64,000 nt of DNA from Ophelia neglecta (GCA_965285935.1 OZ260664.1:14384001-14448000), one strand, 5' to 3'. Positions 233 to 61,899 are shown, counted from the first letter of the stretch. A program made the numbers and translations. The notes: generated by a model from the letters alone, not told the origin.

Positions 233-255
233 GGTGGCCACCGGCTGTGGCTGGG
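233..255 (+). other. Solo copy of conserved hairpin motif (GCCAC-cggct-GTGGC)
   Basis: ggtg GCCAC cggct GTGGC tggg: perfect 5-bp stem, 5-nt loop and the same GGTR/TGGG flanks as the array-1 core. Flanking DNA is unrelated to the array. Confidence 0.7.
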
Positions 256-1192
256 TTCCCCAAAGACTATACCAACATCTTTTTTACTTTTTTCCTATGT
301 GATGTGTACATACTTGACAAAAGTTCTCTGTTTTGTATCCATTTTACTTGGAAGGAAAACTTGAAATATGTCCAATAATATGTAAACCATCTCCAGTAAA
401 ATCTGCAGTATGTGTTTTAACCGAGCAAACGATCAATGTCAATAGGTTTTGAGTGACACCTTCAGTACAATTGGGTTAGAGTCGCAAAAAAATGCGTCCG
501 CAGATTCCAGAATCACTTGCTACGTACACTTGTTGTTATTTTTTGTTTTTCCTATTACTCGGGTTTTAAGTAAGACTCGAAAGGGAAATATGCTTGAAAA
601 CATGAGAACACCACTTCGTTTATAACTGTTTTTACAGTGCATGGCATTGGGTACCTGGATTTATTGTCATCGATAATTACTGACAACCACTTAACATTGA
701 CTAACCCTCTACCGTAAACTACTATCATGCTGGATATGAAAGTTATTCAATATGAAAAATTGACCGATACTAAAGGAAATTCCAACACAAATAAACAAAC
801 ACTAGAGGAAACTAAAGGATTGAAAATTCATCATACCCCCTCTACATGACACAAAACCAGAATCTTAAATAAATGGGATAAGAAGAAAGGTTTCACTGCC
901 CGAAAACTTCTTGGCAAGGAAATAAATAATCACATACTTCTGGTAGACTAGGACAACAGGATAATAGACAACAAAGGACAAGCAAATATCCCGGATAAGG
1001 AAATGTTATGTGGCAGTAGGAAAAATAATACAAAATCTCTATTATAAATTCACACGGAATATCAAAAATGAATAGAAAATGAATAGAAAATAAAGTCAAC
1101 TATGCTCTTCGACAAGGAAATGTCAACAAGAAGAAAGAAAAATACAGTTCGTAGGAACATGTTAAACATAAAAAAAAAACAAGGGAAAATGA

Positions 1193-1267
1193 ATGCTAGA
1201 CCAGAATTGAACGGCTAAATCTTGACACTGACACATCTGACAACGCCTTATCCACTTGCGGCATCGC
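1193..1267 (-). mobile_element. Degenerate tRNA-like / SINE head (Pol III A/B-box-like)
   Basis: Minus strand reads GCGATGCCGCAAGTGGATAAGGCG...GTTCAATTC followed by T-runs. A-box-like and B-box-like motifs are present, but I could not fold a convincing cloverleaf. Confidence 0.3.
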
Positions 1268-2659
1268 AAACCGAACAAAATACAGAGGAATATTCATGAA
1301 TGGTTCTACGTCATTTTAGCAAACTGAAAGGGGAAAACATCAAAAGCAAAATGGGTGTATTTTTAAGTTTGGAATAGCATAATAGGTACATATTTAGAAA
1401 CAAGAAGGAATAGACAAAAACCTGACCCGGGTTATTGAATAGAACACCCGACCATAGAAACATTTTGTGAAATAAATATGCTGATTTTGTAATTTTTGGG
1501 AAGTTATATACTGCCTCTGAATGTTCCGAAGGGCATACTGTCGATATAAAAACACAGTAAAACCACAGGGCTTTCAGTAGCGTAGCTAGGCTAGAAAGGT
1601 GCCATATTTATATTTTGGTTAGATAAGAAAGTATGGACGCAAAAAGTGACAAGAGTAGTACGTGTCTCTGGGTTAGTCGAACGATTAGTTGTGGCCAACC
1701 GCATAACCATATACCCTGCATGTAGACTATAAACAAGGGTTGGCTCCAAATAGCATAAGATACAGACTAAGTAGTTCGGGAAATGGTTATCCTAGCAAAG
1801 GGACTTGCCCTAGCAAAGGGACTTGCTAATAGGTAGATTGAAAATAAATCGCAAATACCAACCAATGTTCCCTTGCTACATATTTAGTTGAACTTTGACA
1901 ACCACTATTGTGATGATTTAGGCATTCTCAGCCAATGGAATTTTCTTTGTAGAAAGTAGTAAAGACGAGATGTGCAGCCACATAGGTGTAGACAGTAGCT
2001 TTCATTCTTCTATCGATACCTTAGTAGTGATGAGACAATATATACCCTGCGTACAGAACAGGAATGCATAGTGTTGACTTTCAGTTGGTGCAATGAATAA
2101 ATACTACTATTGTATATCAGCAAGGTTCAGTAGTAAGGCAGATCCAAATTGATTTAAGTGTATATGCACTGAAGCAGGAAATTAAGGTCAAGATTTTCAC
2201 CTCAGCCTATTGACTAAGAATGAAGTCGATTGAAGTGTCATTATAAATATATGTTGATGGCAGCCCAATTGATCGATGATTTGTAAAGGCATCATTTGCC
2301 AGATAGTCTTGTATGATTGGAAAAATGTCTGTCCAAAGTCCTGGGCAATACATGGGCTAAGTACACATTTGAGCTATCTCACAACTTGAACTATCTCACA
2401 TCTAAACCATTTAATATATAAAGAACGTAGATGCACGACTTCGAGATATGAAATTATATGAATGATATTCATTGCCTTAGTTGACGCTTACCATATTTGA
2501 CCACATTCGAGACACACATTAAAAGTCTCCAATTATTACTTACCACCTCTACTCTTTTGATGACCATTGTCCATGGTGAACAACTAAATCCATGCCTCGC
2601 CAATTTTGATGTCCGTAAATATCCGATTAAAGATGGCAACAATGCTATAGGAGCTATAT

Positions 2660-2697
2660 CAGTACAGTGGGTGACCACCAGCTGTGGTTGGGTGCTG
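2660..2697 (+). repeat. Diverged outlying copy of array-1 core (ACCAC-cagct-GTGGT)
   Basis: cagtacagtgggtg ACCAC cagct GTGGT tgggtgctg matches the array core. Confidence 0.8.
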
Positions 2698-5600
2698 AAT
2701 GTAGAAATATATTTTGAGTATGTCCTCGTTTGAGTATGTCCTCGTTAGGGTAAAGTTATTTGATAAATGGCTTGCGCTGTAGTAATTGGGGAAAACCATG
2801 CGATTTACATCTATCGGATAGATATTTATCAAACTGCAAACAGATAAACAGATTATTCAAGCTGAGTTGGCTTTCCATCATATGCCTTTGTAATTTTCAA
2901 GCACGGGACTATTCTCCTGTTAGGTCATGCCATTAAATTAGGAGATAAATGGTTAATAATTAGGGGACTGATTGTCCTATTTAAATCTATTGGGCATTCT
3001 TATGCCATAAAAAATTATTCTTTGCCAAAACCAAACCAAGTACCTGGCAGGTACTACAAAACAAATGTAACATATATATGTATATGTATATATGCTGTAT
3101 TGAATATACACTGAAGCATTTGTTGCTTCATAAGTAACCACGTTCTTGTAAAATGATTGGTCCAACATCGGCTGGTAGTCATCGACTGGGCGCTGATATT
3201 TTTCTCCACCATGTAGCTTAAGGAGTTGACAGGTATTAGTTTCAAATCTGCAAAGTGCCTTCAGTAGGCATTGCATCCAGAACCAATTGCTACACAGCAA
3301 TGCGCTGCTTAGCTAAAAATGAAACGTAATAGGAGCAATTTCAACAGAGGATAATAGACGTAAATTGAATCTAAACAGAATATATATCTTCACCTCATCT
3401 ATCAGAGGGCATCCGTTATAGATTACTATCGGATTTTTTGCTCCGCAGAGTGATAGCCAGCTATGGTTGGGTTCTGCAAAATAGAAAACCTTTTTTAAGG
3501 CTTCGCTACAATCAAATACAGTTCGTTATTCAGTCTCCGCTGTTAGTCACCACTTGTGGCTGGATTCTTCAGGAATTCTAATCACATTTGGAAAAAAATA
3601 ATGCCCAATATAAAGACCCTCCCAAGACTTCCGTAAATATGACAGCAGGTTATATCAAACCTACTCAGCATATTTTGTATCCCCGTAGGACTGAGTAGTT
3701 CTCAAAACCTTCAAAAGCCAACAACGGCGTCCAAGGAGCATCCGCTTTATATCACCAACCAAGTATTAGTTACTCAGTCAGTTCTCAGTTATTTCGCCCG
3801 AAATCATAAGTGGTAAATAACAGTAGGTTATATGTAATCAGTGCAGTGGGTGACCATCAGCTATGGTTGGGTTCTGCATATTAGGTAACTTAAAATCTTC
3901 ACCAAAACAAGGGTCGGAGAAATTTCTACATTCAGCCTTTGCTGGTAGTCACATGCTGTGACTGGGTACCTTCGGAATTTCTTCAAAACTCACTTGCGAA
4001 TCAGATTCAATATGAACGCTTCCCTAGGGTTTATAAACTACGAATACAAGTTGAAGCAAACATGGTCGGGTTAGTTCAAATCTCTATGTTGCAGGGTAAT
4101 GCCACTTTTTAAACACTCGAAAACCACACAAGTCTTTCAGAGGACATCCGTTATAGAGTACAGTCATAGATTTGATTCACCGACACACAAAAAACGAGTT
4201 ATTTCAACATAAATTTTAAAGGGAAGTATTACAGTAGGTTGTATCTAATTAGTGCAGTGGGTGACCATCAGCTGTGGTTGGGTCCTGCAAATTAGAAAGC
4301 CTTTCTGAAAACTTAACCTTGAAATTGCTGCAGGTCACTAAGTGTGACTAGGTATCTTTAGATTTGCTATAACATGACTTGAAAATCGTTTCACAGGAAT
4401 TACTGCCCTAGCACTTTCTAAACTCCTCAAACAGATCATAGCACAACTTTGAAAGTACAATGCATCCGCCTATTAAAGGTTAGAATCAATGTCAAGGAAT
4501 GCTGTAACACTACACACAATGTTTAAACGTGTCCACTATCAATGACTGTACATCACTTAGCGGCTCAGCTAAAAGTAACATGTTATCGTAACCACATTTA
4601 CAGGGGATAGCCGATAGGAAGATTTATCTAATTAGTGCATTTGGTGACAATCAGCTATTGTTGGGTTCTGCAAATTTGAAAACTTCTCTTAAGGCTTCGC
4701 TACATTGAAATCAAAGATCTGAATATGCGCAATCCATCGTTTGCTGCAGGTCACTAAGTGTGACTAAGTCTCTTTAGATTTGCTATAACATGACTTGAAA
4801 ATCGTTCCACAGGAATTACTGCCCTAGCACTTTCTAAACTCCTCAAACAGATCATAGCGCAACTTTGAAAGTACAATGCATCCGCCTATTAAAGGTTAGA
4901 ATCAATTTCAAGGAATGCTGAAACACTACACCCACTGTTCAAACGTGTCCACTATCAATGACTGTACATCACTTAGCGGCTCAGCTAAAAGTGACATGTT
5001 ATCGTAACCATATTCACAGGGGATAGCCGATAGGAAGATTTATCTAATTAGTGCATTTGGTGACAATCAGCTATTGTTGGGTTCTGCAAATTAGAAAACC
5101 TCTCTTAAGGCTTCTCTACAAACAATATGAACAGTTGGCTTTTTCAACCTCCGCTGTTAGTCACAACTTGTAGCTGGATTTTTCCTGATTTCTTCTAATC
5201 ACATTTATGAAATATTTATCGATATAAAGGCTGTCCGAGAATTCCGTAAATGCGACAATAGGCGGTATCGAACATGTTCAGCATATTTATTGTGTCCTCA
5301 TATCACCGAGTAGCTTCACCTTAAAATAAAGATATGGAAAAGTCGTGAATAGGTCTATACTTTGTATTACCTGACTTGAAAATCGTTTCACAGGAATAAC
5401 AGGTTAGATTCAATTTCAAGGAATGCTGGAACACCAAAAGCTGTTCAAAGCGCGTCCACTCTCAATGACTGTACAACACCTAGCTGCTCAGCTAAAAATG
5501 TCATGTAATCGTAAATATATTCACAGGGAATAGCCGATAGGAAGATTTATCTAATTAGTGCATCTGGTGACAATCAGCTATTGTTGGGTTCTGCAAATTA

Positions 5601-8600
5601 GAAAACTTCTCTTAAGGCTTCGCTACAAGCAAATATGAACAGTTTGTTGAATCTGTATCCGCCGTTAGTCACCAATTGTGGCTGGATTCTTCAGGATTGC
5701 TTGTCACCACATTTGAGAAATGGTAACCAATATAAAGACCATCCGAAGACTTTCATAAATACAACAGTCAGTATGGAACATGTTCAGCATATTTTGTATC
5801 CACGTAGGACCGAGTAGCCCTCAAAACCTTCAAAAGCCAACAAACGGCGCCCAAGGAGCATGTTTATATCACCATCCAAGTGTTAATTGCTCAGTCAAAT
5901 CTAGGTTATTTCGCCCGAAATCATAATCAGGACTTAGCTGCTCAGCTAAAAGTGACATATAATCGTAGCCATATTCACAGGGGATAGCCGATAGGAAGAT
6001 TTATCTAATTAGTGCATCTGGTGACAATCAGCTATTGTTGGGTTCTGCAAATTAGAAAACTTCTCTAGAGGCTTCGCTACAACCAAATATGAACAGCGCG
6101 TTGCTTCTATATCCGCCGTTAGTCACCAATTAAGGCTCGATTCTTCAGGATTGCTTGTAACCACAGTTGAGAAATAATAACCAATATAAAGACAACCACA
6201 AGACTTTCATAATTACGACAACAGGCAGTATGGAACATGTTCAGCATATTTTGTATCCCCGTAGGACCGAGTAGTTCTCAAAACCTACAAAAGCCAACAA
6301 CGGGGCCCAGGGAGCATCCGTTTATATCACCATCCAAATGTTAGTTACTCAGTCAAATCTAAGTTATTTCGCCCGAAATAATAGAGGGTAAATAATAGTA
6401 GGTTGTATATAATCAGTGCAGTGGGTGACCATCAGCTATGGTTGGATTCTGCATATTAGGTAACTTAAAATCTTCACCAAAACAAGAGTCTGAGCAATTT
6501 CTACATTCAGCCTTTGCTGGTAGTCACATGCTGTGACTTACCTTCGGAATTTCTTCAAAACTCACTTGCGAATCAGTATGACGCTTCCCTAGGGTTTATT
6601 AACTACGAATACAGGTTGAAGCAAACATGGTCGGGTTAGTTCAAATCTCTATGTTGCAGGGTAATGCCACTTTTTAAACACTCGAAAACCACACAAGTCT
6701 TTCAGAAGACATCCGTTATAGATTACAGTCATAGATTTGCTTAGACACACAAAAGACGAGTTATTTCAACATTAATTTTAAGGGGAAGTATTACAGTAGG
6801 TTGTATCTAAGTAGTGCAGTGGGTGACCATCGGCTGTGGTTGGGTCCTGCAAATTAGAAAGCCTTTCTGAAAACTTAACCTTGAAATAAAGATATGGAAA
6901 AATCGTGACTAGGTTATATTTGTATTACCTGACTTGAAAATCGTTTCACAGGAATTAGTGCCTTAGCTCTTTCTTAACTCCTCAAACAGATCATAGCACA
7001 ATTTTAAAGATACACTGCATCCCGCCATTAAAGGTTAGATTCAATTTCAAGGAATGCTGGAACACCACACACTATTGAAAGCGCGTCCACTATCAATGAC
7101 TACACAGCACTTAGCTGCTCAGCTAAAAGTGACATGTAATCGTAGCCATATTCACAGGGAATAGCCGATAGGAAGATTTATCTAATTAGTGCATTTGGTG
7201 ACAATCAGCTATTGTTGGGTTCTGCAAATTAGAAAACTTCTCATAAGGCTTCGCTACAACCAAATATGAACAGCGCGTTGATTCTGTATCCGCCGTTAGT
7301 CACCAATTGGGGCTCGATTCTTCAGGATTGCTTGTAACTACAGTTGAGAAATAATAACCAATATAAAGACAACCACAAGACTTTCATAATAACGACAACA
7401 GGCAGTATGGAACATGTTCAGCATATTTTGTATCCCCGTAGGACCGAGTAGTACTCAAAACCCACAAAAGCCAACAACGGGGCCCAAGGAGCATCCGTTT
7501 ATATCACCATCCAAATGTTAGTTACTCAGTCAAATCTAAGTTATTTCGCCCGAAATCATAGAGGGTAAATAATAGTAGGTCGTATATAATCAGGGCAGTG
7601 GGTGACCGTCAGCTATGGTTGGGTTCTGCATATTAGGTAACTTAAAACCTTCACCAAAACTAAGAGTCTGAGCAATTTCTACATTCAGCCTTTGCTGGTA
7701 GTCACATGCTGTGACTGGGTACCTTCGGAATTTCTTCAAAACTCACTTGCGAATCAGTATGAACGCTTCCCTAGGGTTTATTAATTACGAATACAGGTTG
7801 AAGCAAACATGGTCGGGTTAGTTCAAATCTCTATGTTGCAGGGTAATGCCACTTTTTAAACACTCGAAAACCACACAAGTCTTTCAGAGGACATCCGTTA
7901 TAGATTACAGTCATAGATTTGCTCCACAATCACACAAAAGACGAGTTATTTCAACATAAATTTTAAAGGGAAGTATTACAGTAGGTTGTATCTAATTAGT
8001 GCAGTGGGTGACCATCAGCTGTGGTTGGGTCCTGCAAATTAGAAAGCCTTTCTGAAAACTTCACCTTGAAATTGCTGCAGGTCACTAAGTGTGACTAGGT
8101 ATCTTTAGATTTGCTATAACCTGACTTGAAAATCGTTTCACAGGAATTACTGCCCTAGCACTTTCTTAACTCCTCAAACAGATCATAGCACAACTCTGAA
8201 AGTACAATGCATCCGCCTATTAAAGGTTAGAATCAATTTCAAGGAATGCTGAAACACTACACACACTGTTCAAACGTGTCCACTATCAATGACTGTACAT
8301 CACTTAGCGGCTCAGCTAAAAGTGACATGTTATCGTAAACATATTCACAGGGGATAGCCGAAAGGAAGATTTATCTAATCAGTGCATTTGGTGACAATCA
8401 GCTATTGTTGGGTTCTGCAAATTAGAAAACTTCTCTTAAGGCTTCGCTACAACCAAATATGAACAGCGCGTTGATTCTGTATCCGCCGTTAGTCACCACT
8501 TGTGACTCGATTCTTCAGGATTGCTTGTAACAAAAGTTGAGAAATAATAACCAATATAAAGACAACCCCAAGACTTTCATGATTACGACAACAGTCAGTA

Positions 8601-11600
8601 TGCAACATGTTCAGCATATTTTGTATCCCCGTAGGACCGAGTAGCTCTCAAAACCTTCAAAAGCCAACAACGGCGCCCAAGGAGCATCCGTTTATATCAC
8701 CATCCAAGTGTTAGTTACTCAGTCAAATCTAAGTTATTTCGCCCGAAATCATAGAGGGTAAAAACAGTAGGTTGTATGTAATCAGTGCAGTGGGTGACCA
8801 TCAGCTATGGTTGGGTTCTGCATATTAGATAACTTAAAATCTTCACCAAAACTAGAGTCTGAGCAATTTCTACATTCAGCCTTTGCTAGTAGTCACATGC
8901 TGTTACTGGGTACCTTCGGAATTTCTTTAAAACTCACTTGTGAATCAGATTCAATATGAACGCTTCCCTAGGGTTTATTAACTACGAATACAGGTGGAAT
9001 CAGACATGGTCGGGTTAGTTCAAATCTCTCTTTTGCAGGGTATTGCCACTTTTTAAACACTTTAAAACCACCCAAGTCTATCAGAGGACATTCGTTATAG
9101 AGTACAGTCATATATTTGATTAACCGACACACAAAAAACGAGTTATTTCAACATAAATTTTAAAGGGAAGTATTACAGTAGGTTGTATCTTATTAGTGCA
9201 GTGGGTGACCATCAGCTGTGGTTGGGTCCTGCAAATTAGAAAGCCTTTCTGAAAACTTCACATTGAAATCAAAGATCTGAATATGCGCAATCCATCGTTT
9301 GCTGCAGGTCACTAAGTGTGACTAAGTGTGACTAGGTCTCCTTAGATTTGCTATAAACTGACTTGAAAATCGTTTCACAGGAATTACTGCCCTAGCACTT
9401 TCTAAACTCCTCAAACAGATCATAGCACAACTTTGAAAGTACAATGCATCCGCCTATTAAAGGTTAGAATCAATATCAAGGAATGCTGTAACACTACACA
9501 CAATGTTTAAACATGTCCACTATCAATGGCTGTACATCACTTAGCGGCTCAGCTAAAAGTGACATGTTATCGTAACCACATTTACAGGGGATAGCCGATA
9601 GGAAGATTTATCTAATTAGTGCATTTGGTGACAATCAGCTATTGTTGGGTTCTGCAAATTAGAAAACTTCTCTTAAGGCTTCTCTACAAACAATATGAAC
9701 AGTTGGTTTTTTCAACCTCCGCTGTTAGTCACAACTTGTGGCTGGATTTTTCCTGATTTCTTCTAATCACATTTATGAAATATTTATCGATATAAAGGCT
9801 GTTTGAGAATTCCGTAAATGCGACAACAGGTGGTATCGAACATGTTCATCGTATTTTTTGCGTCCTCCTATTACCGAGTAGTGACATTTCTGAAAACATT
9901 CGAAAGCTACAAACGGGGCTCAAAGAGAATCCGCTATATATATCATCGTCTCATCTATCAGAGAGCATCTATTATATATTACTATCGAAGTTTTTGCTAA
10001 ACAGACAAAAGGGTACTATACAGTAGGCTGTATCTCATCAGTGCAAAGGGTGACAATCAGATGTGGTTGGGTCCTGCAAATAAGAGAGCCTTTCTGAAAG
10101 CTTCACCTTAAAATAAACATATGGAAAAATCGTGCCTAGGTCTATATTTGTATTACCTGACTTGAAAATCGTTTCACAGGAATTAGTGCCTTAGCACTTT
10201 CTTAACTCCTCAAACAGATCATAGCACAATTTTAAAGATGCACTGCATCCCGCCATTAAAGGTTAGATTCAATTTCAAGGAATGCTGGAACACCACACAC
10301 TATTGAAAGCGCGTCCACTATCAATGACTATACAGCACTTAGCTGCTCAGCTAAAAGTGACATGTAATCGTAGCCATATTCACAGGGGATAGCCGATAGG
10401 AAGATTTATCTAATCAGTGCATGTGGTCACAATCAGCTATTGTTGGGTTCTGCAAATTAGAAAACTTCTCTTAAGGCTTCGCTACAACCAAATATGAACA
10501 GATCGTTGATTCTGTATCCGCCGTTAGTCACCACTTGTGGCTGGATTCTTCAGAATTGCTTGTAACCACATTTGAGAAATAATAATCAATATAAAGACTA
10601 CCCCAAGACTCTCATTAATACGTCAACAGGCAGTATGGAACATGTTCAGCATATGCTTTATCCCCGTAGGACCGAGTCGCTCCCAAAACCTTCAAAAGCC
10701 AACAACGGCGCCCAAGAAGCATCCGATTTATATCACCATCCAAGTGTTAGTTACTCAGTCAAATCTAAGTTATTTCGCCCGAAATCATAGAGGGTAAATA
10801 ATAGTAGGTCGTATATAATCAGGGCAGTGGGTGACCATCAGCTATGGTTGGATTCTGCATATTAGGTAACTTAAAACCTTCACCAAAACTAAGAGTCTGA
10901 GCAATTTCTACATTCAGCCTTTGCTGGTAGTCACATGCTGTGACTGGGTACCTTCGGAATTTCTTCAAAAACTCACTTGCGAATCAGTATGAACGCTTCC
11001 CTAGGGTTTATTAATTACGAATACAGGTTGAAGCAAACATGGTCGGGTTAGTTCAAATCTCTATGTTGCAGGGTAATGCCACTTTTTAAACACTCGAAAA
11101 CCACACAAGTCTTTCAGAGGACATCCGTTATAGATTACAGTCATAGATTTGCTCCACAGACACACAAAAGACGAGTTATTTCAACATAAATTTTAAAGGG
11201 AAGTATTACAGTAGGTTGTATCTAATTAGTGCAGTGGGTGACCATCAGCTGTGGTTGGGTCCTGCAGATTAGAAAGCCTTTCTGAAAACTTAACCTTGAA
11301 ATTGCTGCAGGTCACTAAGTGTGACTAGGTATCTTTAGATTTGCTATAACATGACTTGAAAATCGTTTCACAGGAATTACTGCCCTAGCACTTTCTAAAC
11401 TCCTCAAAGAGATCATAGCACAACTTTGAAAGTACAATGCATCCGCCTATTAAAGGTTAGAATCAATTTCAAGGAATGCTGTAACACTACACACAATGTT
11501 CAAACGTGTCCACTATCAATGACTGTACATCACTTAGCGGCTCAGCTAAAAGTGACATGTTATCGTAACCATATTCACAGGGGAAAGCCGATAGGAAGAT

Positions 11601-16076: not shown

Positions 16077-16598
16077 AAAAACTCCGATAGTAATATATAA
16101 TAGATGCTCTCTGATAGATGAGACGATGATATATATAGCGGATTCTCTTTGAGCTCCGTTTGTAGCTTTCGAATGTTTTCAGACATGATACTACTCAGTA
16201 ATATGAGGACGCAAAATATGCTGAACATGTTCGATACCACCTGTTGTCGTATTTACGGAATTATCGGACAGCATTTATATCGATAAATATTTTTCAAATA
16301 TGAACAGTTGGTTTTTTCAACCTCCGTTGTTAGTCACAAATTATGGCTGGATTTTTCCGGATTTCTTCCAATCACATTTGAAAAATATTTATCGATATAA
16401 ATGCTGTCCGATAATTCCGTAAATACGACAACAGGTGGTATCGAACATGTTCAGCATATTTTGCGTCCTCATATTACTGAGTAGTATCATGTCTGAAAAC
16501 ATTCGAAAGCTACAAACGGAGCTCAAAGAGAATCCGCTATATATATCATCGTCTCATCTATCAGAGAGCATCTATTATATATTACTATCGGAGTTTTT
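16077..16598. repeat. 223-bp inverted repeat (16077-16299 / 16376-16598) with 76-bp spacer inside array 1
   Basis: 16077-16299 reads as the reverse complement of 16376-16598, including the local variant gtagtatcat. It replaces one hairpin core. Confidence 0.93.
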
Positions 16599-19404: not shown

Positions 19405-19883
19405 GGTTTCGAGTTATGTTCAAAACTCTCATGCTCGCATACCGTGTACTCATAGGCTCTGCTCCATCATACCTCTCGGAGCTTCTCACCATTCGCCAAA
19501 CCACATATATGGGACTACGCTCATCGGATTCACTAACATTGGTGCAGCCTCACAGCAGGCTATGTACATATGGAGATAGGGCTTTCTCTGTGGCAGCTCC
19601 CAAATTATGGAACTCTTTGCCACATCACATTAGGGGTGCTAACAGTATTGCCATTTTTAAAAGGGAATTAAAAACTCACTTGTTTAGGCTGGCCTACCCA
19701 TAAACATTCTTTTTAGATGTTTAAAAAAAATAATATTTGTATTTTTAAATTATTGCACTTCTTATCTCAGATTATGCTGGTTTTTCATTAATTATTTTGT
19801 TGTCTTAATTTTATGTACAGCGCTGCAGAACATTTTGCATGAATGGGGCGCTTTATAAAAATAAATATTATTATTATTATTAT
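19405..19883 (+). mobile_element. 5'-truncated L2/CR1-clade non-LTR retrotransposon (ORF2 C-terminus, 3'UTR, (ATT)n tail)
   Basis: Peptide FKTLMLAYR..APSYLSELL..LRSS..GDRAFSVAAPKLWNSLP..FKRELKTHLF is the typical L2/CR1 ORF2 end. The 3'UTR has agcgct...gcgcttta and a (tta)n tail. TAAT lies on both sides (19401-19404, 19884-19887) and the insertion interrupts an array unit. Confidence 0.92.
19416..19703 (+). pseudogene. Fragment of LINE ORF2 (post-RT C-terminal region)
   Basis: 95-aa ORF carrying the L2/CR1 C-terminal motifs. It is 5'-truncated, with no RT or endonuclease domain present. Confidence 0.88.
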
Positions 19884-22375
19884 TAATCAGTGCAGTGGGT
19901 GACCATCAGCTATGGTTGGGTTCTGCATATTAGGTAACTTAAAATCTTCACCAAAACTAGAGTCTGAGCAATTTCTACATTCAGCCTTTGCTGGTAGTCA
20001 CATGTTGTGACTGGGTACCTTCGGAATTTCTTCAAAACTCACTTGCGAATCAGTATGAACGCTTCCCTAGGGTTTATTAACTACGAATACAGGTTGAAGC
20101 AAACATGGTCGGGTTAGTTCAAATCTCTATGTTGCAGGGTAATGCCACTTTTTTAACACTCGAAAACCACACAAGTCTTTCAGAGGACATCCGTTATAGA
20201 TTACAGTCATAGATTTGCTTAGACACACAAAAGACGAGTTATTTCAACATAAATTTTAAAGGGAAGTATTACAGTGGGTTGTATCTAATTAGTGCAGTGG
20301 GTGACCATCAGCTGTGGTTGGGTCCTGCAAATTAGAAAGCCTTTCTGAAAGCTTCACCTTAAAATAAAGATATGGAAAAATCGTGCCTAGGTCTATATTT
20401 GTATTACCTGACTTGAAAATCGTTTCACAGGAATTACTGCCCTAGCACTTTATTAACTCCTCAAACAGATCATAGCACAATTTTAAAGATGCAGTGCATC
20501 CCGCCATTAAAGGTTAGATTCAATTTCAAGGAATGCTGGAACACCACACGCTGTTCAACGCGTCCACTATCTATGACTATACAGCACTTCGCTGTTCAGC
20601 TAAAAGTGACATGTAATCGTAAACATATTCACAGGGGATAGCGGATAGGAAGATTTATCTAATCAGTGCATTTGGTGACAATCAGCTATTGTTGGGTTCT
20701 GCAAATTAGAAAACTTCTCTTGAGGCTTCTCTACAACCAAATATGAACAGTTCGTTGAATCTGTATGCGCCGTTAGTCACCACTTGTGGCTCGATTCTTC
20801 AGGATTGCTTGTAACCACGTTTGAGAATTAATAACCAATATAAAAACCATACCAAGACATTCATAAATACGACAACAGGCAGTATGGAACATGTTTAGCA
20901 TATGTTGTATCCCCGTAGGACCGAGTAGTTCTCAAAACCTTCAAAAGCCATCCGCTTTATATCACCATCCAAGTGTTAGTTACTTAGTCAAATTCTAAGT
21001 TATTTCGCCCGAAATCATAGAGGGTAAATAACAGTAGGTTATATGTAATCAGTGCAGTGGGTGACCATCAGCAATGGTTGGATTCTGCATATTAGGTAAC
21101 TTGAAATCTTCACTAAAACAGTGTCTGAGCAATTGCTACCTTCAGCCTTTGCTAATAGTCATCTGTTGTGACTGGGTATCTTCGGAATTACATTTGCGAA
21201 TCAGGTTCAATGTGAATGTTTCCCTAGACTGGATTAAATATGAATTCAGGTGGAATCAAGCATGGGCGGATTATTTCGAATTTCCACGTTACAGGGTAAT
21301 GTCCTTTTTCAAAACAGGCAAAAGCCACACGCGTCTGTCAGGGAGTATGCGTTATAGAATACAACCAAAGTTGTTGATCCATGGAAAAATAAACGAGTTA
21401 TTTCAACATATATTCAAAGAGGAAATATGACAGAAGGTTGTATCTAATCAGTGCAGTGGGTGACCATCAGCAATGGTTGGGTCCTGCAAATTAGAAAGCC
21501 TTTCTGAAAATTTCATCTTGAAATTAAGATCTGGAAAGATCTGAATATGCGCAATCCATCGCGGGCTGCAGGTCATCAAATGTGACTAGGTCTCTTTAGA
21601 TTTGCTGTAACCTGACTTGAAAATCGTTTCACATGAATTACTGCCCGGCACTTTCTAAACTCCTCAAACAGATCATAGCACAGTTTTGAAAATGCATTAC
21701 ATCCCCTTGTTAAAGGTTAGATTCAATTTCAAGGAATGCTGGCACACTACACACACTGTTCAAAGCGCGTCTAATATCAATATCAGTACAGCATTAGCTG
21801 CTCAGCTAAAAGTGACATGTAATCGTAACCACATTCACAGGGAATAACTGATAGAAAGATTTAACTAATCAGAGCATCTGGCGAAAATCAGCTATTGTTG
21901 GGTTCTGCAAATTAGAACACCTCTCTTAAGGCTTCGCTACAAAAAATTGATCAGTTGTTTTTTTCAACTACCACTGTTAGTCACCACTTGTGGCTGGATT
22001 CTTCAGGGTTGCTTCAAATAACATTGGAAAAACATTTACCGATAAAAAGGCTGTTCCAAGACTTCCGTATAGGCGACAACAGGTGGAATCGAACATGTTT
22101 AACATATTTTGCCTCTTCGTATTACCAAGCAGGGTAAATTCTTAAATCCGTCAAAAGCTACAGACGGCGCTCAAGGCGCATCCACAATAGATCACCATCC
22201 AAATGTTAGTTACTCGGTCAAATCACAGTTATTTCGCCCGAAATCATAAGGGGTAAATAACAGTAGGTCGTATATAATCTGTGCAGTGGGTGACCATCAG
22301 CTATGGTTGGGTTCTGCGTATCAGGTAACTTAAAATCTTCACAAAAACAGCGAACAAGTCCGAAGCTTGACATCG

Positions 22376-25020
22376 AGTTGTATTTAAGCAGTGTAGTGGG
22401 TGATCATCAGTGTGATTTTGATCTGCATGATTTGCAAACATGTAAGAAACTTGATAATAACCAATTCAATTAAATCCTGGCATCCTGTAACATTTTGCGA
22501 TGTTGATATAAATAACAGAGGAACCGAATCCTCTAGGAAAAACCGATCATTACTTCGGGAAAGATGTACAGATATTCATAAAGTTAGTTTAAGGATATGC
22601 AATGCTTGAAAAACATCCACTCAATGTTTTGGGAAAACAATTGCTGCAAAACGAATAACACCAATCGCTTTGATCCAACCGAATGCGTAATAATAATACA
22701 TCTTATGGCTTCTTCATTAATTAGTGCAGTGGGTGACCATCAGCTATGGTTGGGTTCTGCATAATTTAACGGTGGTAAAGCAACACATGTAATACAACTC
22801 GCCCTTTTAACGCTTAACCATAGCGGGTGGTCACCGGCTGTGACTGGGTGCATGAACGAATCAAGTTATATCTGCACATATACCTAATTGAACTCCAAAT
22901 TGAATTGGCAATCTCACACAGACTGTGTCTCCTACTAATGGAAACCAAGATCTGGAAGTGGCAATTACTTTATACTATACATGCGGGGTTACATATACTG
23001 TAGAAACAGAACCATACTGTTTAAATGATAAATGCAAAATAATTTATACAAAGTAGAAAATAGTGAATGCTTGTCTAGGCATCTTTTCGACTAACTACTC
23101 TTAAAGCGCTACAATAAGCACACAATTTTACCGAGTGCTAAGTGCGACAACTGCAATCGCCGGTTATTCTGCTTTGGGAGTTGTGTGATCATAGGTTATG
23201 CCCCAGGTATTCACAGTATCAAGTTAATTTTTCATGCAAGCAAACCATTGTTTCAACATGTTATAATATCAGTTTGATGTTCGATGTGTACTTTAATCTG
23301 GTGGTAACTCGTGAACTATTACAAAACCGTGTCGAACCGTTTATTGTATAACTATGAACGTTTTATCGGTTGTGTATGCTTGAAGTTGTTGTAGTTTGAT
23401 TATCATAAGTACTGCATTCGCACAAAACCCCAGTTTACGTATTTGACACACACTCACGCTCTGGTTATGATGTGATCTTTGGTTAAAAGCTAAGTTGACT
23501 GTAGATTTAAAACAAGTAGGATATCTTGCCATATACATTTTAGGCATCGTTATTTCTGTACATTTTTTCCACGATTGCTAGCTGGTTTGTTTTATGTAAA
23601 ACAATTGCATGATAACCTAATGCTGATTCTCCTCCTGTACGATTAAGAACTCGTCACCTTTGCCTTTGATACTATCACGCATTAGCTAACTACCGAAGCT
23701 ATAATTAACCGACCAACATGTTGATGCAAATCAATTTACTTCAAATTTTTATTAAGAACCGTAATGTGAATAATTATTGAAATCTAACGAATACGTATCT
23801 GTTGGTTAACCTGCGAATATAAAATAACCCTTTTACCGGCTTGTCTACGGTTTTTGGGCTGCAGTACTGGATTTAGGTGGTTTGCTTGGTAAATACTTTG
23901 ATCAATCCCATCCTTTTTACACGAGGCTTTAAAAAAAACAGTGCTAGCTTCTTTGTGACACCTGCAGTTTGACAATTTTTCTGGGAATTTTTCTGGGAAT
24001 GCCCCACTATATAAAGCATGTTTTGTTGTTGCCGGCCACTTAATGTATATTTCATCAAATATGTCAAGGTATTTGGGCCTTTAGTTTATAATATTATGAG
24101 TGTGTCTTAAATTACCTCTATTATAATAGGCATTTCTAAGCACTAATAGGTATATGATATAGAGCTAGTTTTAATTATGGCTGCCCAAATTCTCAGGTTT
24201 TATCTTGAATTGCACGGTTGTGATAATCTGTCTCAGATTAATATAGTCTGGTTATTTGACCCCTTGTAGTGGTATTAGTAGTTCGAAATATATTGAACTC
24301 GACACATTGTGTTTGTGTTGGACTGGTATATATTAATTTCGTTTCTAAACGGTATTTATGTGCTAATGAATCATTCACTTTTGAACTATTATGCACTAAA
24401 ATACTATTAGTGACACTTTCAAACCCATTTTGCCTGACATATGTACCATTTTCAACGTTTAACCCGTGGTTGAAGTCATTTACCTGTTTGTCTTTTACTA
24501 AAGCAAAACGCTTTACTGTGACTGAGAACAAAGATTTGTCAATCATATGTTCATTTCCCACAATAACAGTCTGGATATAAGGTATTATACTTTGCGGTTA
24601 AAGGCGTATTCTTTATCTTTTGTAAGAAAGCACTTCTGTTTGCGCTTGCATTGAACAAGTACTTGTTTGTGGTGAATGCCTGTAAACAATTATATTGGAT
24701 AACCTTTTTTGAAACAACATGTCAAAACTTTCTTTTTTCTTTCTTGCTTAGGATTGTTACTAGTTGCTAATTGTAACGCTGGAATGCTACAAATCATTTT
24801 CAAAGCGCTCCACTTTGGCATAAGCAAAATGCTATTCTGATGACATTGTATGTTACAAAACGGTTTGTGGAACACTATTAAGATGACCTAGTCCACCGAC
24901 AATGAAATATATATAACGTATATAACGAAATTAAATCCACTAGTACACGGAAAAACTGAAAATGAATCCAATTCATTGAAACGATAACGGTAAAGTAATG
25001 CGGACAGTGAAAGGCAGGAA
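22376..25020. repeat. Diverged module M1 (hairpin core ... GC-motif-like end)
   Basis: Colinear homology with 25245-27120, e.g. 22376/25246 gagttgtatttaa.cagtg.agtgggtgatcatcag, 23181/25538 ttgtgtga.catag, 24421/26852 aaaccc.ttttgcctg.catat, ~24670/27105 gtgaat.cctgta. Confidence 0.8.
22717..22850 (+). other. Isolated paired-hairpin unit (ACCAT/ATGGT at 22736 plus GTCAC/GTGAC at 22830)
   Basis: A near-perfect array core, with a second perfect hairpin 94 bp later. The linker is not obviously alignable to the array linkers. Confidence 0.75.
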
Positions 25021-25244
25021 TATGAAAGCAAAAACCAGAGGGTTTTGAATTGTGTGGCAAAAAAATCTTCAACGCCCCCAATGAATTTACCAGTGTGTAT
25101 ATTTGAAATTAACTATTGTGCTTCAAACTAAGTGCTAAAAATCGCTCAAATGCTAAAACGCATACGTTGAATCAGTTAAGTTTTGCGTACATGTTAGTGG
25201 TACACAGAATCATTTTATGTCTGAACAGAATTAACGTGGAAGAA

Positions 25245-28200
25245 GAGTTGTATTTAATCAGTGCAGTGGGTGATCATCAGCAATGGCTCGGCGTGTTAGC
25301 AGAGTTGACTCAGATAACAATTTTTCTGGTTAGCGATTCCTCTATGAAAAAACCAACCATTATCTCAGATATGTTAAACACTTGTTTTATTAAACAGATA
25401 ACCTATATGAAAAAGTGGAAAAACTGCCTCCAAGCAGAAACCGCCAACAAAATACTCGATTATCCCGACTACAATATGCACGCTTATACAGGCCCTAATT
25501 ACGAAAACTCATATGTTATGTAGTACTGATTTGCGAGTTGTGTGACCATAGACTATTCCTCAAATATACACTGTATGAAAATAACAGTTTGTGCGAATTG
25601 TATGACATTTATACAATCAAACAATGTCAGAAAGCTAACAGATGTTTTCAGAATATCATAGTATCAAATTGCTATTCAATGTGTATGTCCATTTACCGTA
25701 TGTTACCAATTGAGCTTTAACAAAACTGTATTGAAGTTACCGTCCTGCATTTGCAGTTTATTGCTATAACTGTGACCGTCCTATAAGTTATTTATTGTCT
25801 AAAGCTATTGTAGATTGAAAATGATACTTGCTGAACCCACACAAAACCTCAGTTTTCACAAAGCGTTGTTTGGTTAAATGTAGATTTACGAACAAGAATG
25901 ATATCTTGCTATGCAAAATGTGTGTCTTGCTATTCCTGTACGTTTTCCAACTAGTCCTTTTGTGTGTATATGCTGTTGAATATAAGCTCGACCACCTAAG
26001 TTTAATGCTGATGTACTTATATGTTTAAGGACTCCTGACATTTGTCTTTCAACTACCAGAAATTGACTGAATACTCATCACGTATTGTATTAGTAACCGG
26101 AACAGCATGTTTGTGCCATTCACTAAAGTTGTGATTTTGTATAAAAAATTGTCACTTGATTAATGGGTCTAGTCTAACATATTTGTACACAATAGTTAAC
26201 CTGCAAATGATTTGATAGCAAATCACAACCCCTTATTGGCGGCGGTATGCCATTGTATAATGTTTCGGGGTTATATTTCTTGAATGCACTGATAACATTA
26301 AGTGGTTTGCCTTTTTTTAAAGCTTTCATCTATTCCATCTGAATTCCTTGGTGATGTCAAAAATACAATCTCACTGTTTTCTTCTCTGTTCCAAATGCCT
26401 CATGTCAATCTTTATTGTGAATATCCAACAATAGAATAGCTTGATTTGTTTGTGGATTCCTTTTTGTTGTATCTTTAATTAAATACTTCATGGTATATGG
26501 GGCTAATAGCCAGACATTTTACGTTTCTAGAATTATTTTAATTATCATAGCCTATGCTAAGCACTTACCGATATATGCTATAAAAGGGATATGGAACTAG
26601 CTTAGATTATTGGTGCCCGGTTCCTCATGTCTTATATTACATTGCACGGATGTGATAATCTAATCCAGATTAGACTGATTATTTGAACCCTTGTACAGTC
26701 GTAACCTGCTCGAACTATCTTGAACGCGTCATTTTCTTTTTTGATTAGATTGGTGTTTAATATGGTATTTATGTGCTTATCAAGCGTGTACTTATACTCT
26801 TATTAGCATTAATATATAGTATAAGTGTCATAATGCTTAGGGTCACGTTGCAAACCCCTTTTGCCTGGCATATCTGCCATTTCACCGTCAACCCGCGGGT
26901 AAAGTAATTATCTTTGAGTCTTGTACTAAAGCAAACGCTGTACTGTAACTGATGATAAATTGTTTTTAATAATCTGGTCCTCTCCTAGATTAACAGCCTG
27001 AATATAAGATACTCTACTTTAGGGTTTGAGGCATATTCGGTTTCTTTGTAAGAAGCATGAAGCATATCTGTTTGCGCTTTGTACTTGGACAGGTCTTTGT
27101 TTGCAGTGAATACCTGTATACATTTGGTTTTGATAATCTGAGTAATTTCCAATCACCATAAGCAAATTCTTGCATCTTATATAGGATAGGTGTATAAGAG
27201 ATGATTTTACTGATAGTGGAAATTCACTCTCCCTTTTAACTTTTAACTTTTGACTCTCATGATGTTAATTGTATATATCGGGACCCCTTAACATGTGCAC
27301 CATTTATTCCCATACGTTTTGATTGCGCATATTGCTTGTACATTTGTTATTAGTCAAAACAATATCAACAAAATTCAACAAAGCTATTCCACATCCTTAG
27401 TTTTTTAAGCCTGTATCTGCTGATATTTTGTTGTATTATGGTTAAGTAGCTGTACAATGCGACACATGGCGAAACTATTTACTCACCAGTTTGAATTCTT
27501 AAACTGTTTGAAATCAGTAACATTATTTGACGTTCTGTGAAATATGAGTTGGTTTATTATGTTATGAACTTATATAATTGTCTTTTGAATTTTCCAAAAT
27601 TTGTATGGTCCTTGTGATATTTTGTTCCAACTGTATATTTTTGTACAAACTACTGTGATCATTTTTCCTATAATTTATTCATATACATAATTTGGTTTTT
27701 AGTAACTCATAAGGATTCCGGATGTTTATGACACAGATAATGTTATTATTTGTTGCTCTCTGTTATTCAAATTGGCTTTGTTACGAACGTCATAATGGCT
27801 TTGTTTGTGACTCTAATGATTCCAAATTGTGATACTAACAGATGATCAACCTGTGTGGTTTCCTTATCATACACAAATTGAAATTCCATCTGTACGTGGC
27901 AGTAGGTTATTTAGAAATCCTTAGCATTCTGGTTGAGGCAACAAACTTGTTTGAACAATACACTCTGATACGTCTAGAAAGGCCTTACCATTTAAGTAAA
28001 ATAACATTCTACAGTGCCAAATGAAAGTGCAATTAGAATCATATGATGCTTGTCATCTAAGAACAAATAATATAGCACATACATCTCTATAAAAAGAGAT
28101 GTATGTAAATATAATTATGAGATGTGTATTAGTTGCTTAATCACTGTGTAGAGCAGCCGCAATAACAAACACTCATAAGTTCAATGCGCAGAAATACAAA

Positions 28201-29959: not shown

Positions 29960-30262
29960 CTTCTTTAAGTTGAGCTTATTCCGTATTGGTTTGTTTTGTG
30001 ACATGTTGCCAGTATTGCAGAAACTATACCACGACCATAAGCGTGAATGTTATACATAGATAAAAGAAATGAAGCAAAAACTGTTGCTGTATAACTTCTT
30101 GGCTGTTATAGTTGGTATTATTACATTAAAGGTGTATGCTTTGTGGATATGCAGTTATGTCAGATGAGGATCAAAAAACCATAAAGGCTACACGTGATAG
30201 CATTACAAGAATAACACCCGAAAAAAACTGTTTATTTGCAAGTGAGTGAGTGGAAGGCGGGA
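29960..30262. repeat. Diverged repeat block ending in the GC motif (copy 2)
   Basis: tttaagttgagcttattccgtattggtttg, aagcgtgaatgtta and gtgagtgagtggaaggcggga align with 31375-31704. Confidence 0.7.
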
Positions 30263-31374
30263 GTCGCAACGAACATAGTCAAAGAAATAGGCGTAATAGA
30301 TTCAACTTGAGGTAAACTCCAAATACATAGGAATAATTCAGCCATAGATACTTTTAGCAGATGTTAAGTCAATAAGACTGCAATCACGACGGAACACGTT
30401 TAAAAGAAGGATAACGGGAAAGGCATGGATTTGGATATAAGACACTTGGCATTAAGCTTGGAGAATGAATTGATGTAATTTTTTATCTCATCTATGTTGT
30501 TACTATGTCCCACAGTCCATGTCTAATTGTGCAAAGTTAGGCTAGGGTGCTTTATGAAAATATACGGTAGTCTGTAATTGTTCTTTATAGCGACAGTGTT
30601 AATCCCTTGTACGTACAGTTATACTTGAATGGCTTTAAGTACTGAATTGTTGTGAAATGAAACAAAAAAGGTCAATTAAGAAAGGTCGGTTTGAACGTGA
30701 ATCGCTAAACTGATGAAGGTAAATGAAATACAAACCAATACAATGTACTTAGCAAAAGAAATGAACACGGATTGAGAAAGCATCCATCCTAAACGATTGA
30801 AACATACCAAGCTTTGTCAATTTCCTGAAAGGAAAAAAGTATCTTTAATGACAGTAACATCTTACTACATACGATTCTTTGTAAAAGATGTGTTTTTATT
30901 ACTTTAATGGCATTTACGATCAGGAGAGATAAGGGTTTAATAGAGGTCATCATAATTGCTTGATATGCATTACGCGGTTGGTATTTTATTATTGTTTCAT
31001 GCGGGGTCTTATATATGACCATTTTCGGGTGTGTATTGCTTGTTTTATCCACTTATATACCATTAATCCCACAATCTCACATGTCGACATTTCTAGCAAA
31101 TGCATTCCAAGGTACCTGCCGTGAATGGATTCCTAATTATGAAAGTTTTGTTGTTCGAGCTTAGTTATTTACCTCCCTGAAATCTAGTTTCATGAAAATA
31201 ATGTTGTACTGTTGAAAGTTGTGTCCGTAAATTTTGCGTCTATGATTCCACTAATGATGTAAACATTTATTGTGTTAGTGAATTCTAGGGTATACCGATG
31301 TGTAAGCCACAGTTGGCTTAAAACGAGTTTATGGTGCTTTATTACAACAAGTTTTTGTTTTTTATATTTGTTTT

Positions 31375-31704
31375 TTTTTAAGTGGAGTTCATCCCACGTT
31401 GGTTTGCTCTTTGTAAACACTTGAGTTGCAAATATTTTCCAAACTAAACAAAAAACCCAAGCGTGAATGTTAAATATATGTGAAACATATATGTTTAATC
31501 AGAAACTAATTGTATATATTAATGTTAAGCGAATGAGTTGGCATTGCCACATTAAGATGTAAACTTGTTAGGAAACCTCCCGAAGTGTATAATTAGTTGA
31601 CTGATGGCCTAAAATACCAAGACAAAAACCTAAAACGTTGCATACTATTATAATAATACCACAAAAAAAATGTTGATGTGCAAGTGTGCGGGTGGAAGGT
31701 GGGC
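31375..31704. repeat. Diverged repeat block ending in the GC motif (copy 3)
   Basis: tttaagtggagttcatcccacgttggtttg, aagcgtgaatgtta and gtgtgcgggtggaaggtgggc align with 29960-30262. Confidence 0.7.
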
Positions 31705-33060
31705 AACGCACTAAAGCCAAATTTCGATCTTGCATAGGCTTAACCAGTTTTGTTCAGCTACACACCAAATAAAACAAAGTAAAATATTTCCGGGCTACAG
31801 ATTTGTACACGCAAACAAATATTTACTGTCATGATGCTCTCAGATATTCATATTGAGATATTGTACCCCTTTACCCCAAACCGTGCTAGATACCTCCTAG
31901 GAATGTGTCTTAATACATGTCAACAAACTCACTTGCAAACATTTGGTGTAGTTGACATACAGATTATTGTTTAAGATATTGACCGCTGGATTGAATGTTA
32001 AATAGAATTAGTTATGTAAGTCATTGCTTTTTATCGAACCTCTTATTGGAAAATAACACCCAGTCAGGCGCTTGTGAGATATTGTTTGGAACTTGGTATT
32101 AATGAGTTGATTCCCTTCCCCCCCTTTTTTTTTTTTACTTTTGGGCGTTATTTTATCTAATCACTTTGTAGCAAGAGCATTGCAATTAAATTGCAAAAGT
32201 CGTTTTTTGCTTATTCAATCTTTTATGGCTAAACCCTATGTTTAATTTAAATTGTCAACGTGCTATTACTGGGAATGTTATTTTGAATTGTGTCATGGCT
32301 TTGTACATTCTAATATTTTCTTGTAGATCGGGTCCTATCCTACTATCCTACTAATGATAGTGTTCATCAATTAGACAATCCATTTACCTAACCATAGTTA
32401 TCGTGATGATCATAGACTGTCCCTAGTATTTTTGTACAAACACTGTCATACTGTGAATGTTTATTACGATCGTACCTTTAAATGATCCAAAATTTTACAT
32501 TGCAACTTTGCCTGAAGATGTGCACCTTTGTGAATCTTTTGCTATACCATTTGAGTTTTATCAGTTCTTTATGTACAAATACATTTTATGGTCAAATACT
32601 ATATAAGATAGCCTTTCACGTCTTGAATACTACTTTGTTTGAACTCATTTCTTCTTTAAGTACAGGACTGTTTGGCTAAATATCCATTTCAACTGTGATA
32701 AGAGTGTTTGTAAAGGTCACGACGCGTCTCAGTACACGACATTCTTTTAAGATATTCCGAAAGTGTGGGCATTACCTATAGACAAGGCAATAAGGAACTG
32801 TTGATTTGTATTCCAGTGTTGTGCTTATTATAATTGTAACATATATAGTGCTTTACGAAATAACGGTCCATCGATATAAACACACGCACTGTTCAGTACC
32901 TATATGCCAGCTGTTTCCCTTCATATTTTAACATGTATTTACGCTTTGAAATATCATTGTATTTGTTTAGTAATATTAGACGTGATATATTTTTTTTTAC
33001 CTGATATGCCTTTTAATATGTCATCACGCAATACTTACTGTATACCCATATAAGTCTTCT

Positions 33061-33090
33061 AGTGGGTGGTCATCGGCTATGACTGGGTGC
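33061..33090 (+). other. Solo copy of conserved hairpin motif (GTCAT-cggct-ATGAC)
   Basis: agtgggtg GTCAT cggct ATGAC tgggtgc: perfect stem with flanks matching the array core, more than 10 kb from array 1. Confidence 0.75.
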
Positions 33091-61836: not shown

Positions 61837-61899
61837 GTAAGTCTGAAACAATGCACAAACCTAATCCCTGCACTTTGTGTACGTTCAATACATTTCTTG

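Follow-up and report, generated by a model that had tools for sequence, protein, structure and literature searches.

A locus-confined stem-loop with compensated stem changes in Ophelia neglecta, a candidate protein-binding platform

Conserved boxes in fast-evolving satellite monomers are often reported, and it is seldom told apart whether selection acts on their sequence, on their fold or on nothing. This question is raised by a 64-kb stretch of the Ophelia neglecta genome (GCA_965285935.1 OZ260664.1:14384001-14448000; hereafter the window, with positions counted from its first letter), which contains no N, is A+T-rich (34-43% G+C) and carries a short hairpin in and around a tandem array. An initial annotation of the window had described a hairpin with GGTR and TGGG flanks repeated dozens of times across 33 kb, and had proposed that its fold, not a peptide, is under selection. 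We scanned both strands for the exact pattern GGT[AG]-N5-N5-N5-TGGG and found 47 matches on the + strand, spanning 233-33088, and none on the - strand. The stem is a perfect 5-bp Watson-Crick helix in 33 of the 47 and holds one non-Watson-Crick pair in ten (nine T.G wobbles and one G.T) and two in the remaining four; a fuzzy scan added a few further degenerate copies. All six stems listed in the annotation (GCCAC/GTGGC, ACCAC/GTGGT, ACCAT/ATGGT, ACAAT/ATTGT, GTCAC/GTGAC and GTCAT/ATGAC) were present at the positions given, except that the GTCAC/GTGAC stem near 9308 lacks the GGTR/TGGG flanks.

The array is an irregular higher-order repeat of three diverged monomer types, A1, A2 and A3 (coordinates of this and the other features are collected in Table 1). 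Hairpin A is present in each monomer, and most monomers have a weaker hairpin B that follows 70-104 nt downstream of it (~95 nt in type A1). We aligned 57 copies of the 44-nt module without gaps (35 distinct rows) to define its anatomy. The outermost part is a stem of 3-5 bp, which reads TGCAG/CTGCA in the array, GGGG/CCCC at 233 and CAG/CTG at 2670. It encloses a symmetric 6x6, G-rich internal loop, with TGGGTG opposite TGGGTY, and above it an inner stem of 5 bp is capped by the pentaloop CAGCT or CGGCT. As RNA, two loop-proximal positions of the internal loop can add G.U pairs to give a 7-bp helix, as predicted by RNAfold and RNAalifold, and the same 86 nt fold at -19.6 kcal/mol as the + strand versus -10.5 as the - strand.

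The inner stem varies in sequence while remaining paired. Counted over the 35 distinct rows of the 57 aligned copies, pair 1 was AU in 28 and GC in 7, pair 2 CG in 27 and UA in 6, pair 3 CG in 19 and AU in 9, pair 4 AU in 33 and GU in 2, and pair 5 UA in 18, UG in 9 and CG in 7. Overall, 94.9% of the inner-stem cells were paired and double changes occurred at four of the five pairs, bearing out the compensatory changes that the annotation had reported at four pairs. The covariation score was 0.306, compared with 0.216 +/- 0.019 for shuffled alignments, and none of 500 shuffles reached it. Conservation was concentrated in the same segment, in agreement with the earlier remark that the unit sequence outside the hairpin is far more diverged: identity between monomer types was 88-96% in the 24-nt core, 81-86% in a 68-nt island and 46-54% in the remaining ~300 nt. 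Within types, nucleotide diversity was 0.041-0.047 in the 44-nt core versus 0.11-0.22 elsewhere (P 0.025 to 4e-10). Solo cores outside the array retain 24-31 nt intact in flanks without detectable monomer similarity. In a profile search, monomer similarity did not go beyond 34-55 nt at each of the cores of 233, 2670 and 33065; it covers only ~50 nt at 2670 (2657-2707) and only 35 nt at 33065, and the core at 233 has flanks without relation to the monomers. Among the three B'-type cores (233, 22826 and 33065), the only differences are two compensated pair changes. Because intact solo cores stand in unrelated flanks, simple recency of the array cannot explain their conservation.

We placed the seven core haplotypes, all from one genome, on a minimal tree that required 11 changes. 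Of these, ten map to the stem, which has ten sites, and one maps to the 14 sites that are unpaired (binomial P 0.0011). All ten stem changes combine into compensated pairs, five in number: pair 1 switched between A-T and G-C, pair 2 between C-G and T-A, pair 3 between C-G and A-T, and pair 5, on two independent occasions, between C-G and T-A. When ten random stem changes were simulated on the tree, all tips were paired at a frequency of 2e-6, and at 0.009 if only transitions were allowed, the latter being the figure of a model that cannot yield the observed transversion pair. Every one-step intermediate that survives has T.G on the + strand; such intermediates are found in the A2 monomers and in B copies with the stems GTCAC/GTGGC and GTCAT/GTGAC. 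As read from these alignments, the constraint has two parts: a 5-bp helix that is free in sequence provided that its arms pair, and a pentaloop C-R-G-C-T with G-rich flanks, (T)GGGTG and TGGGT(K), that are fixed in sequence. The pattern points to selection on a folded single strand and not to a transposon end.

A coding explanation was tried and rejected. One frame stays open through the A copies (ISAVGDHQLWLG...); a TAG terminates it past the hairpin, and within B' copies it meets TGA, which we read directly at 22826 and 33065. With stem changes compensated and loop and flanks fixed, the view that a fold and not a peptide is constrained held up. No ORF (open reading frame) of more than 200 aa occurs in the window, and the longer ORFs gave no Pfam match. 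The longest, of 196 aa (33066-33656, + strand), starts exactly at the last solo hairpin, has an odd composition and no Pfam match, and is probably due to chance.

Compensated changes could also arise without function, as a neutral by-product in which a chance palindrome in a satellite monomer is kept by intra-hairpin template switching and array homogenisation, one arm being copied from the other in replication so that double changes appear in one step. Template switching has been documented to create and maintain hairpin stems with compensatory changes (PMC8794818, PMC5453318). We consider this origin unlikely for the present hairpin. It leaves unexplained the roughly tenfold deficit of changes in loop and flanks relative to the stem on the tree, as well as the intact cores in unrelated flanks at 233, 2670 and 33065. 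No loop inversion, the hallmark of template switching, was seen, and a one-step intermediate is still extant for three of the events, arguing for stepwise change. The annotation had reasoned that template switching would leave loop and flanks unconserved; they are the most conserved positions.

Several observations nevertheless weigh against the explanation favoured below, in which a protein would read the folded strand. Fold energies are ordinary when compared with shuffles (z -1.4, -2.1 and +0.6), and the RNAalifold consensus fold is weak (-6.8 kcal/mol). The in-array hairpin B has a variable loop and flanks and is conserved no better than the linker. Independent lineages are few, with seven haplotypes and five events from one genome. 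The unremarkable energies, the decay of hairpin B and the small number of events in a single genome also speak for the neutral origin. The low diversity of the island could alternatively reflect gene conversion focused on the sole tract that is similar between types. Finally, non-Watson-Crick cells counted by distinct haplotype comprise 22 G.T, 4 A.C and 10 others, and by independent events G.T exceeds A.C by ~7-8 to 3, which is not significant; because of these small numbers, the argument from strand polarity is suggestive and unproven.

The exchange history of the array brings in a second alternative, in which the structure acts at the DNA level and the palindrome, once single-stranded in replication or repair, extrudes to form a hairpin or a cruciform. 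The hairpin might then matter for the array itself, for instance as a hotspot of recombination or gene conversion, as a site where forks pause or as a mark of non-B-DNA comparable to the dyad symmetries of some centromeric satellites. Mosaic breakpoints lie inside the hairpin, as in the copy at 10049, which joins an A3 5' arm to an A2 3' arm, and in three copies with ACCAT/GTTGT. At ~16076 a truncated hairpin forms the exact junction of an inverted duplication, the island is the sole tract similar enough between monomer types for homologous exchange, and G.T is the most stable mismatch in DNA hairpins too. A cruciform, however, needs both strands to fold, and the surviving intermediates are G.T on the + strand and hence A.C on the - strand. 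Extrusion has no need of an invariant, non-palindromic loop and flanks, and the solo cores are conserved outside any array. For a centromere, a single locus of 20 kb is small, and other chromosomes lack the satellite. We therefore rate a DNA-level role as rather unlikely, while keeping it among the serious alternatives.

Recognition of the duplex itself was also weighed, with the copies as sites for a dimeric factor or a multi-zinc-finger protein and the locus as a repeat-built regulatory or architectural element. The blocks GGGTG, CAGCT and TGGGT are invariant at fixed spacing, the two TGGGT(G) blocks forming direct repeats 22 bp apart, all copies share one orientation, and a possible transporter-like gene lies ~28 kb downstream on the same strand (read by eye; Pfam gave no match). 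A duplex reader does not demand complementarity of the variable positions, so that the five compensated double changes would go unexplained, and we hold this explanation to be improbable.

We then asked how far the hairpin extends beyond the window. The free-stem pattern GGTG-N5-CRGCT-N5-TGGGT, scanned over the whole 762-Mb genome, had 45 forward matches and one reverse match; 41 of these 46 lie in the window, and the other five have non-pairing arms. The same pattern written backwards matched twice genome-wide, and chance is therefore excluded. A pattern with R/Y-degenerate stems matched 21 times in the genome, all 21 in the window, and all six genome matches of a B-type pattern were likewise within it. 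A covariance model of the module, run genome-wide, matched the window only, with 150 of ~258,000 candidates scored; the absence elsewhere thus rests on the exhaustive pattern scans. The model had no match in the 40 kb upstream or the 10 kb downstream of the window. Neither the monomer DNA nor the 23.0-25.2-kb flank nor a second tandem array at 35-43 kb has copies elsewhere in the genome. That second array (35174-42900, + strand) consists of ~1-kb units, 82-92% identical and in the same orientation, and gave no match to the hairpin model.

Candidates for a dispersed family were rejected. A pattern allowing up to 3 mismatches gave 183 matches, and outside the window all that it matched was an unrelated 19/39-bp minisatellite. 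This minisatellite (GGTGTGATCACCAGGTATA type) forms large arrays with higher-order periodicity at C9:68165000-68193000, at 38.6-38.7 Mb and 45.7 Mb of C8 and at 113.6 Mb of C5 (loci L032-L037). Two exact matches in metagenome contigs were dismissed as chance, the contigs being high-G+C bacterial sequence and the stems unpaired, and a search of viral contigs for the hairpin gave no match.

This distribution bears on the suggestion in the annotation that the hairpin might be a Helitron, Helentron or REP-like substrate of an HUH endonuclease. The array would on that explanation consist of concatenated ends of a rolling-circle element (Helitron, Helentron/HINE or REP-like HUH substrate). The hairpin does resemble HUH substrates in its short palindrome, its conserved single-stranded flanks and its restriction to one strand, the end of the array coincides exactly with a hairpin, and the genome contains many Helitron-like Rep genes. 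Helitrons have 5' TC and 3' CTRR ends and insert between A and T (PMC4683698). At a distance of 10-13 nt past the hairpin, CT[AG][AG] was found neither in A nor in B' nor in solo copies. Where a Helitron palindrome is G+C-rich, 15-20 bp long and ~11 bp from the 3' end, the stem here is of 5 bp, or 7 bp with G.U pairs, and is mostly A/T-rich in types A1 and A3. The genome has 86 Helitron_like_N loci, the nearest 0.82 Mb from the motif; as no other part of the genome has the motif, these Rep loci cannot carry it. Helentrons and HINEs (DINE-1-like) have subterminal inverted repeats of 12-15 bp, a palindrome of 5-10 bp that lies 8-35 bp from the 3' end, a TT target and T strings, and form interspersed families (PMC4067079). 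The length of the palindrome fits this description, and interspersed copies are lacking. By eye, and with no dedicated inverted-repeat scan, we saw no TC...CTRR ends, subterminal inverted repeats or T strings at the solo copies or array edges.

Like the bacterial REP/BIME elements (RAYT, TnpA-REP), the hairpin is a short imperfect palindrome after a conserved tetranucleotide, strand-specific and clustered. Unlike REPs, which occur in hundreds of dispersed copies together with a Y1 HUH gene, it is found at one locus of a genome in which PF01797 (Y1 transposase) had no match, although control matches were obtained in 6 of 14 reference genomes. Its likeness to Helitron and Helentron 3' hairpins likewise goes no further than a short palindrome near an element boundary in a genome with rolling-circle elements; the ends, the long G+C-rich palindrome, the interspersed copies and a linked Rep were not found. 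A CRESS-DNA or nanovirus-type origin, in which a stem-loop bears a nonanucleotide nick site beside a Rep gene, did not fit either, with a loop of 5 nt (CRGCT) and Viral_Rep matches on C2 and C1 only. We conclude that a rolling-circle terminus is largely refuted for this genome and scarcely tenable. The annotation had also drawn an analogy to viral hr repeats, which found no backing: baculovirus-type hr repeats form clusters of imperfect palindromes interspersed with viral genes, and the window contains no viral or long ORF. In sum, the part of the earlier interpretation that concerned a constraint on the fold was upheld, and the carriers proposed for it were not.

The searches for viral and transposon enzymes yielded two observations of their own. 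PF02407 (circovirus/nanovirus-type Rep) matched at C2:31534013-31534273 (- strand) and C1:18626653-18626832 (+ strand), in frames of 238 and 272 aa, which are probably endogenous CRESS-DNA virus relics on chromosomes other than that of the hairpin. A small contig (C19:1185-491225) has ~17 Helitron_like_N matches in frames of 2214-2238 aa (one of 1293 aa), ~27-30 kb apart, and looks like a tandemly or segmentally amplified block of apparently intact Helitron/Helentron genes.

Known RNA families were no better matched, as the annotation had anticipated. Rfam, with its ribozyme, miRNA and snoRNA families, gave no match on the 64 kb at the gathering threshold, and at E up to 10 it gave two chance-level matches only in 3400-9400; the Rfam models of the iron-responsive element (IRE) had no match, and the hammerhead core CTGANGA is absent. 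Two further candidates were rejected. For a tRNA-like or RNA polymerase III element, an A-box-like word (TAGTGCAGTGG) extends over part of the 5' flank, yet a B-box-like word comes ~15 nt later, far too close, and a tRNA scan with ARAGORN found nothing. For a spliced-leader RNA array, a GT donor occurs only in type A1, an Sm site is absent and the copies are heterogeneous (by eye).

A tandem cluster of microRNA (miRNA)-like precursors in triplets, as in zebrafish miR-430, was considered since array copies extend to an imperfect hairpin of ~53-60 nt (in A2 ~21 bp, at -25.2 kcal/mol in 86 nt) and since three hairpin variants recur in a repeated order at a single locus. Animal miRNA precursors have a stem of ~22 bp with a basal stem below it, fold energies well below those of shuffles and arms that are better conserved than the loop. 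Here, however, the apical loop is the most conserved part and the basal stem is unconserved. Type A3 folds no better than its shuffles (z +0.6), the solo copies are 5-7-bp hairpins only, too short for Drosha or Dicer, and the miRNA families of Rfam had no match. Small-RNA precursors are thus a very improbable explanation.

We tentatively favour, by analogy with hsr-omega and with confidence well short of even, a + strand transcript of a locus-specific repeat that would carry repeated protein landing sites. A fixed loop with fixed single-stranded flanks, a helix that is free but paired, and one polarity are together the signature of a protein-read site on a folded single strand. That the sites keep one orientation over 33 kb of locus-unique sequence, and that one two-site segment was amplified, favours landing sites on a transcript. 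The element would act as a folded single strand of + polarity, most plausibly RNA, and a protein would read the loop and flanks presented on the short helix, the hairpins being its repeated landing sites. These would sit on a putative long + strand transcript running through the locus, and tandem amplification of a ~400-bp piece with two sites would have produced a multivalent platform.

The hsr-omega (93D) locus of Drosophila has 280-bp repeats that are gene-unique and fast-diverging and keep a short hnRNP-binding motif, which is also present in the adjoining unique region (10.1101/695486). The present repeats likewise measure a few hundred bp, occupy 10-20 kb and occur nowhere else in the genome, with a conserved island amid diverging repeats and solo copies in the flanks. 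Locus-unique repeats with a short motif conserved amid divergence are what is seen in the class of repeat-bearing long non-coding RNAs (lncRNAs) of the architectural or sponge kind, in which one transcript runs across the repeats and binds multiple copies of a protein. The hsr-omega motif is a linear nonamer bound by heterogeneous nuclear ribonucleoproteins (hnRNPs), whereas the element here is a 24-31-nt stem-loop with a covarying helix. Transcription is established for hsr-omega and putative for the repeat described here. The two share no sequence similarity; homology is neither expected nor claimed, and the comparison concerns functional class only.

The IRE, the Smaug recognition element (SRE) and lambda boxB each combine a free, covarying 5-bp helix with a conserved loop of 5-6 nt. 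The hairpin resembles them in its 5-bp covarying helix of free sequence capped by a conserved loop, and differs from them in the loop itself, which is CRGCU here and CAGUGN in the IRE, CNGGN in the SRE and GNRNA-like in boxB. It is possible, though on balance doubtful, that the core is an undescribed structured cis-element, maintained through purifying selection at single sites along a putative 33-kb transcription unit and secondarily amplified ~46-fold, and that it forms an animal lncRNA or single-stranded DNA platform titrating or assembling a specific hairpin-binding protein. Such a cis-element would have four parts: the 5-bp helix of free sequence, the invariant CRGCU pentaloop, invariant G-rich strands with G.U and G.G appositions below the helix, and a variable outer stem.

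Table 1. Positions of the hairpin copies, the array and associated features in the window
Feature	Position	Strand	Description
Solo core, B'-type	233..256	+	stem GCCAC/GTGGC, loop CGGCT, own outer stem GGGG/CCCC; 48.8 bits
Solo core, A-type	2670..2693	+	stem ACCAC/GTGGT, loop CAGCT; 59.3 bits
Degenerate B'-type copy	3174..3190	+	5-nt deletion, loop end and start of 3' arm lost; read by eye
Tandem array	3270..22849	+	~46 monomers of ~400 bp (304-507 bp), all head-to-tail in one orientation
Monomer type A1	in array	+	stem ACCAT/ATGGT
Monomer type A2	in array	+	stem ACCAT/GTGGT, T.G wobble at loop-closing pair
Monomer type A3	in array	+	stem ACAAT/ATTGT
44-nt module, reference copy	3839..3882	+	outer stem TGCAG/CTGCA, internal loop TGGGTG/TGGGTT, inner 5-bp stem, loop CAGCT; 69 bits
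Hairpin B, reference copy	3944..3966	+	GGTA GTCAC ATGCT GTGAC TGGG
Inverted duplicate	16077..16303	-	227 bp, 99.6% identical to linker 16372-16598
Retroelement-fragment ORF	19416..19703	+	inserted into A3 monomer; that unit is 886 bp
Degenerate A-type copy	22389..22431	+	GATCAT 5' arm, 3' arm gone; 15.9 bits
B'-type core	22826..22849	+	GTCAC/GTGAC, loop CGGCT; 94 nt after last A copy
Degenerate half copy	25259..25297	+	5' arm and loop retained, 3' arm lost; 12.8 bits
Solo core, B'-type	33065..33088	+	GTCAT/ATGAC, loop CGGCT; 10 kb past array; 45.8 bits

Within the array, the three monomer types follow one another in A1-A2-A3 trimers of ~1.2 kb with extra A2 and A3 monomers in between, and mosaic monomers are present besides them. 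Monomers of the same type are 93-95% identical at spacings of 1.2, 2.0 or 4.5 kb. Head-to-tail arrangement, ordered diverged types and this degree of same-type identity are those of a satellite with higher-order repeats, and the array by itself is an ordinary locus-specific satellite with higher-order structure. Like such satellites, it has degenerate copies at its edges and one short segment that is far more conserved than the rest. It departs from them in occupying a single 20-kb locus instead of forming a chromosome- or genome-wide family, and in a conserved segment that has compensated stem changes and survives in isolated cores beyond the array.

The right edge of the array is the 3' end of the core at 22826, where monomer similarity stops exactly (TGGGT|GCATG). 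The degenerate copy at 3174 was recovered as a weak nhmmer match at 3151-3196, and the half copy at 25259 sits in genome-unique sequence. The unique right flank contains old local duplications, ~75% identical (24407-24688 with 26837-27122, and 22370-22420 with 25240-25290), one pair of which carries both degenerate hairpin copies of the GATCAT type. The inverted duplicate adjoins a copy of hairpin A that is cut at ~16076, after its 5' outer arm, and may be a palindrome-associated fold-back rearrangement.

The three sequencing runs found were short-read DNA from one sample. Over the unique flank their contigs have single-copy depth, and over the array the summed depth is higher; we therefore consider the assembly sound, and the array is supported by independent contigs. 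Read depth over the ORF at 19416-19703 was ~9x the single-copy level, which identifies it as a multi-copy element. The ORF had no Pfam match and ends in a ...GDRAFSVAAPKLWNSLP... tail, which we take to be typical of a retroelement family of aquatic animals. The retroelement fragments of the window are those of an animal genome. Two ORFs on the same strand as the hairpins, at 61710-62093 of the window (+ strand) and at L044:3276-3662 (+ strand), resemble by eye two exons, the first and a later one, of a transporter of the SLC22 type; situated ~28 kb beyond the last solo copy, they are fragments without a Pfam match.

The locus is unusual in combining a covariation-supported stem-loop, whose loop and flanks are invariant, with bare cores beyond the array, the motif being absent from Rfam and from the rest of the genome. 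Selection on sequence, on fold or on nothing could be separated here within one genome by the compensated stem changes, the invariant loop and flanks, and the bare cores in unrelated sequence. If transcription occurs there, the locus would be a compact case of a single protein-binding hairpin turned into a multivalent RNA platform through tandem amplification; if it does not, the locus would be a clean example of a DNA hairpin on which selection, or a coupled mutational process, has acted.

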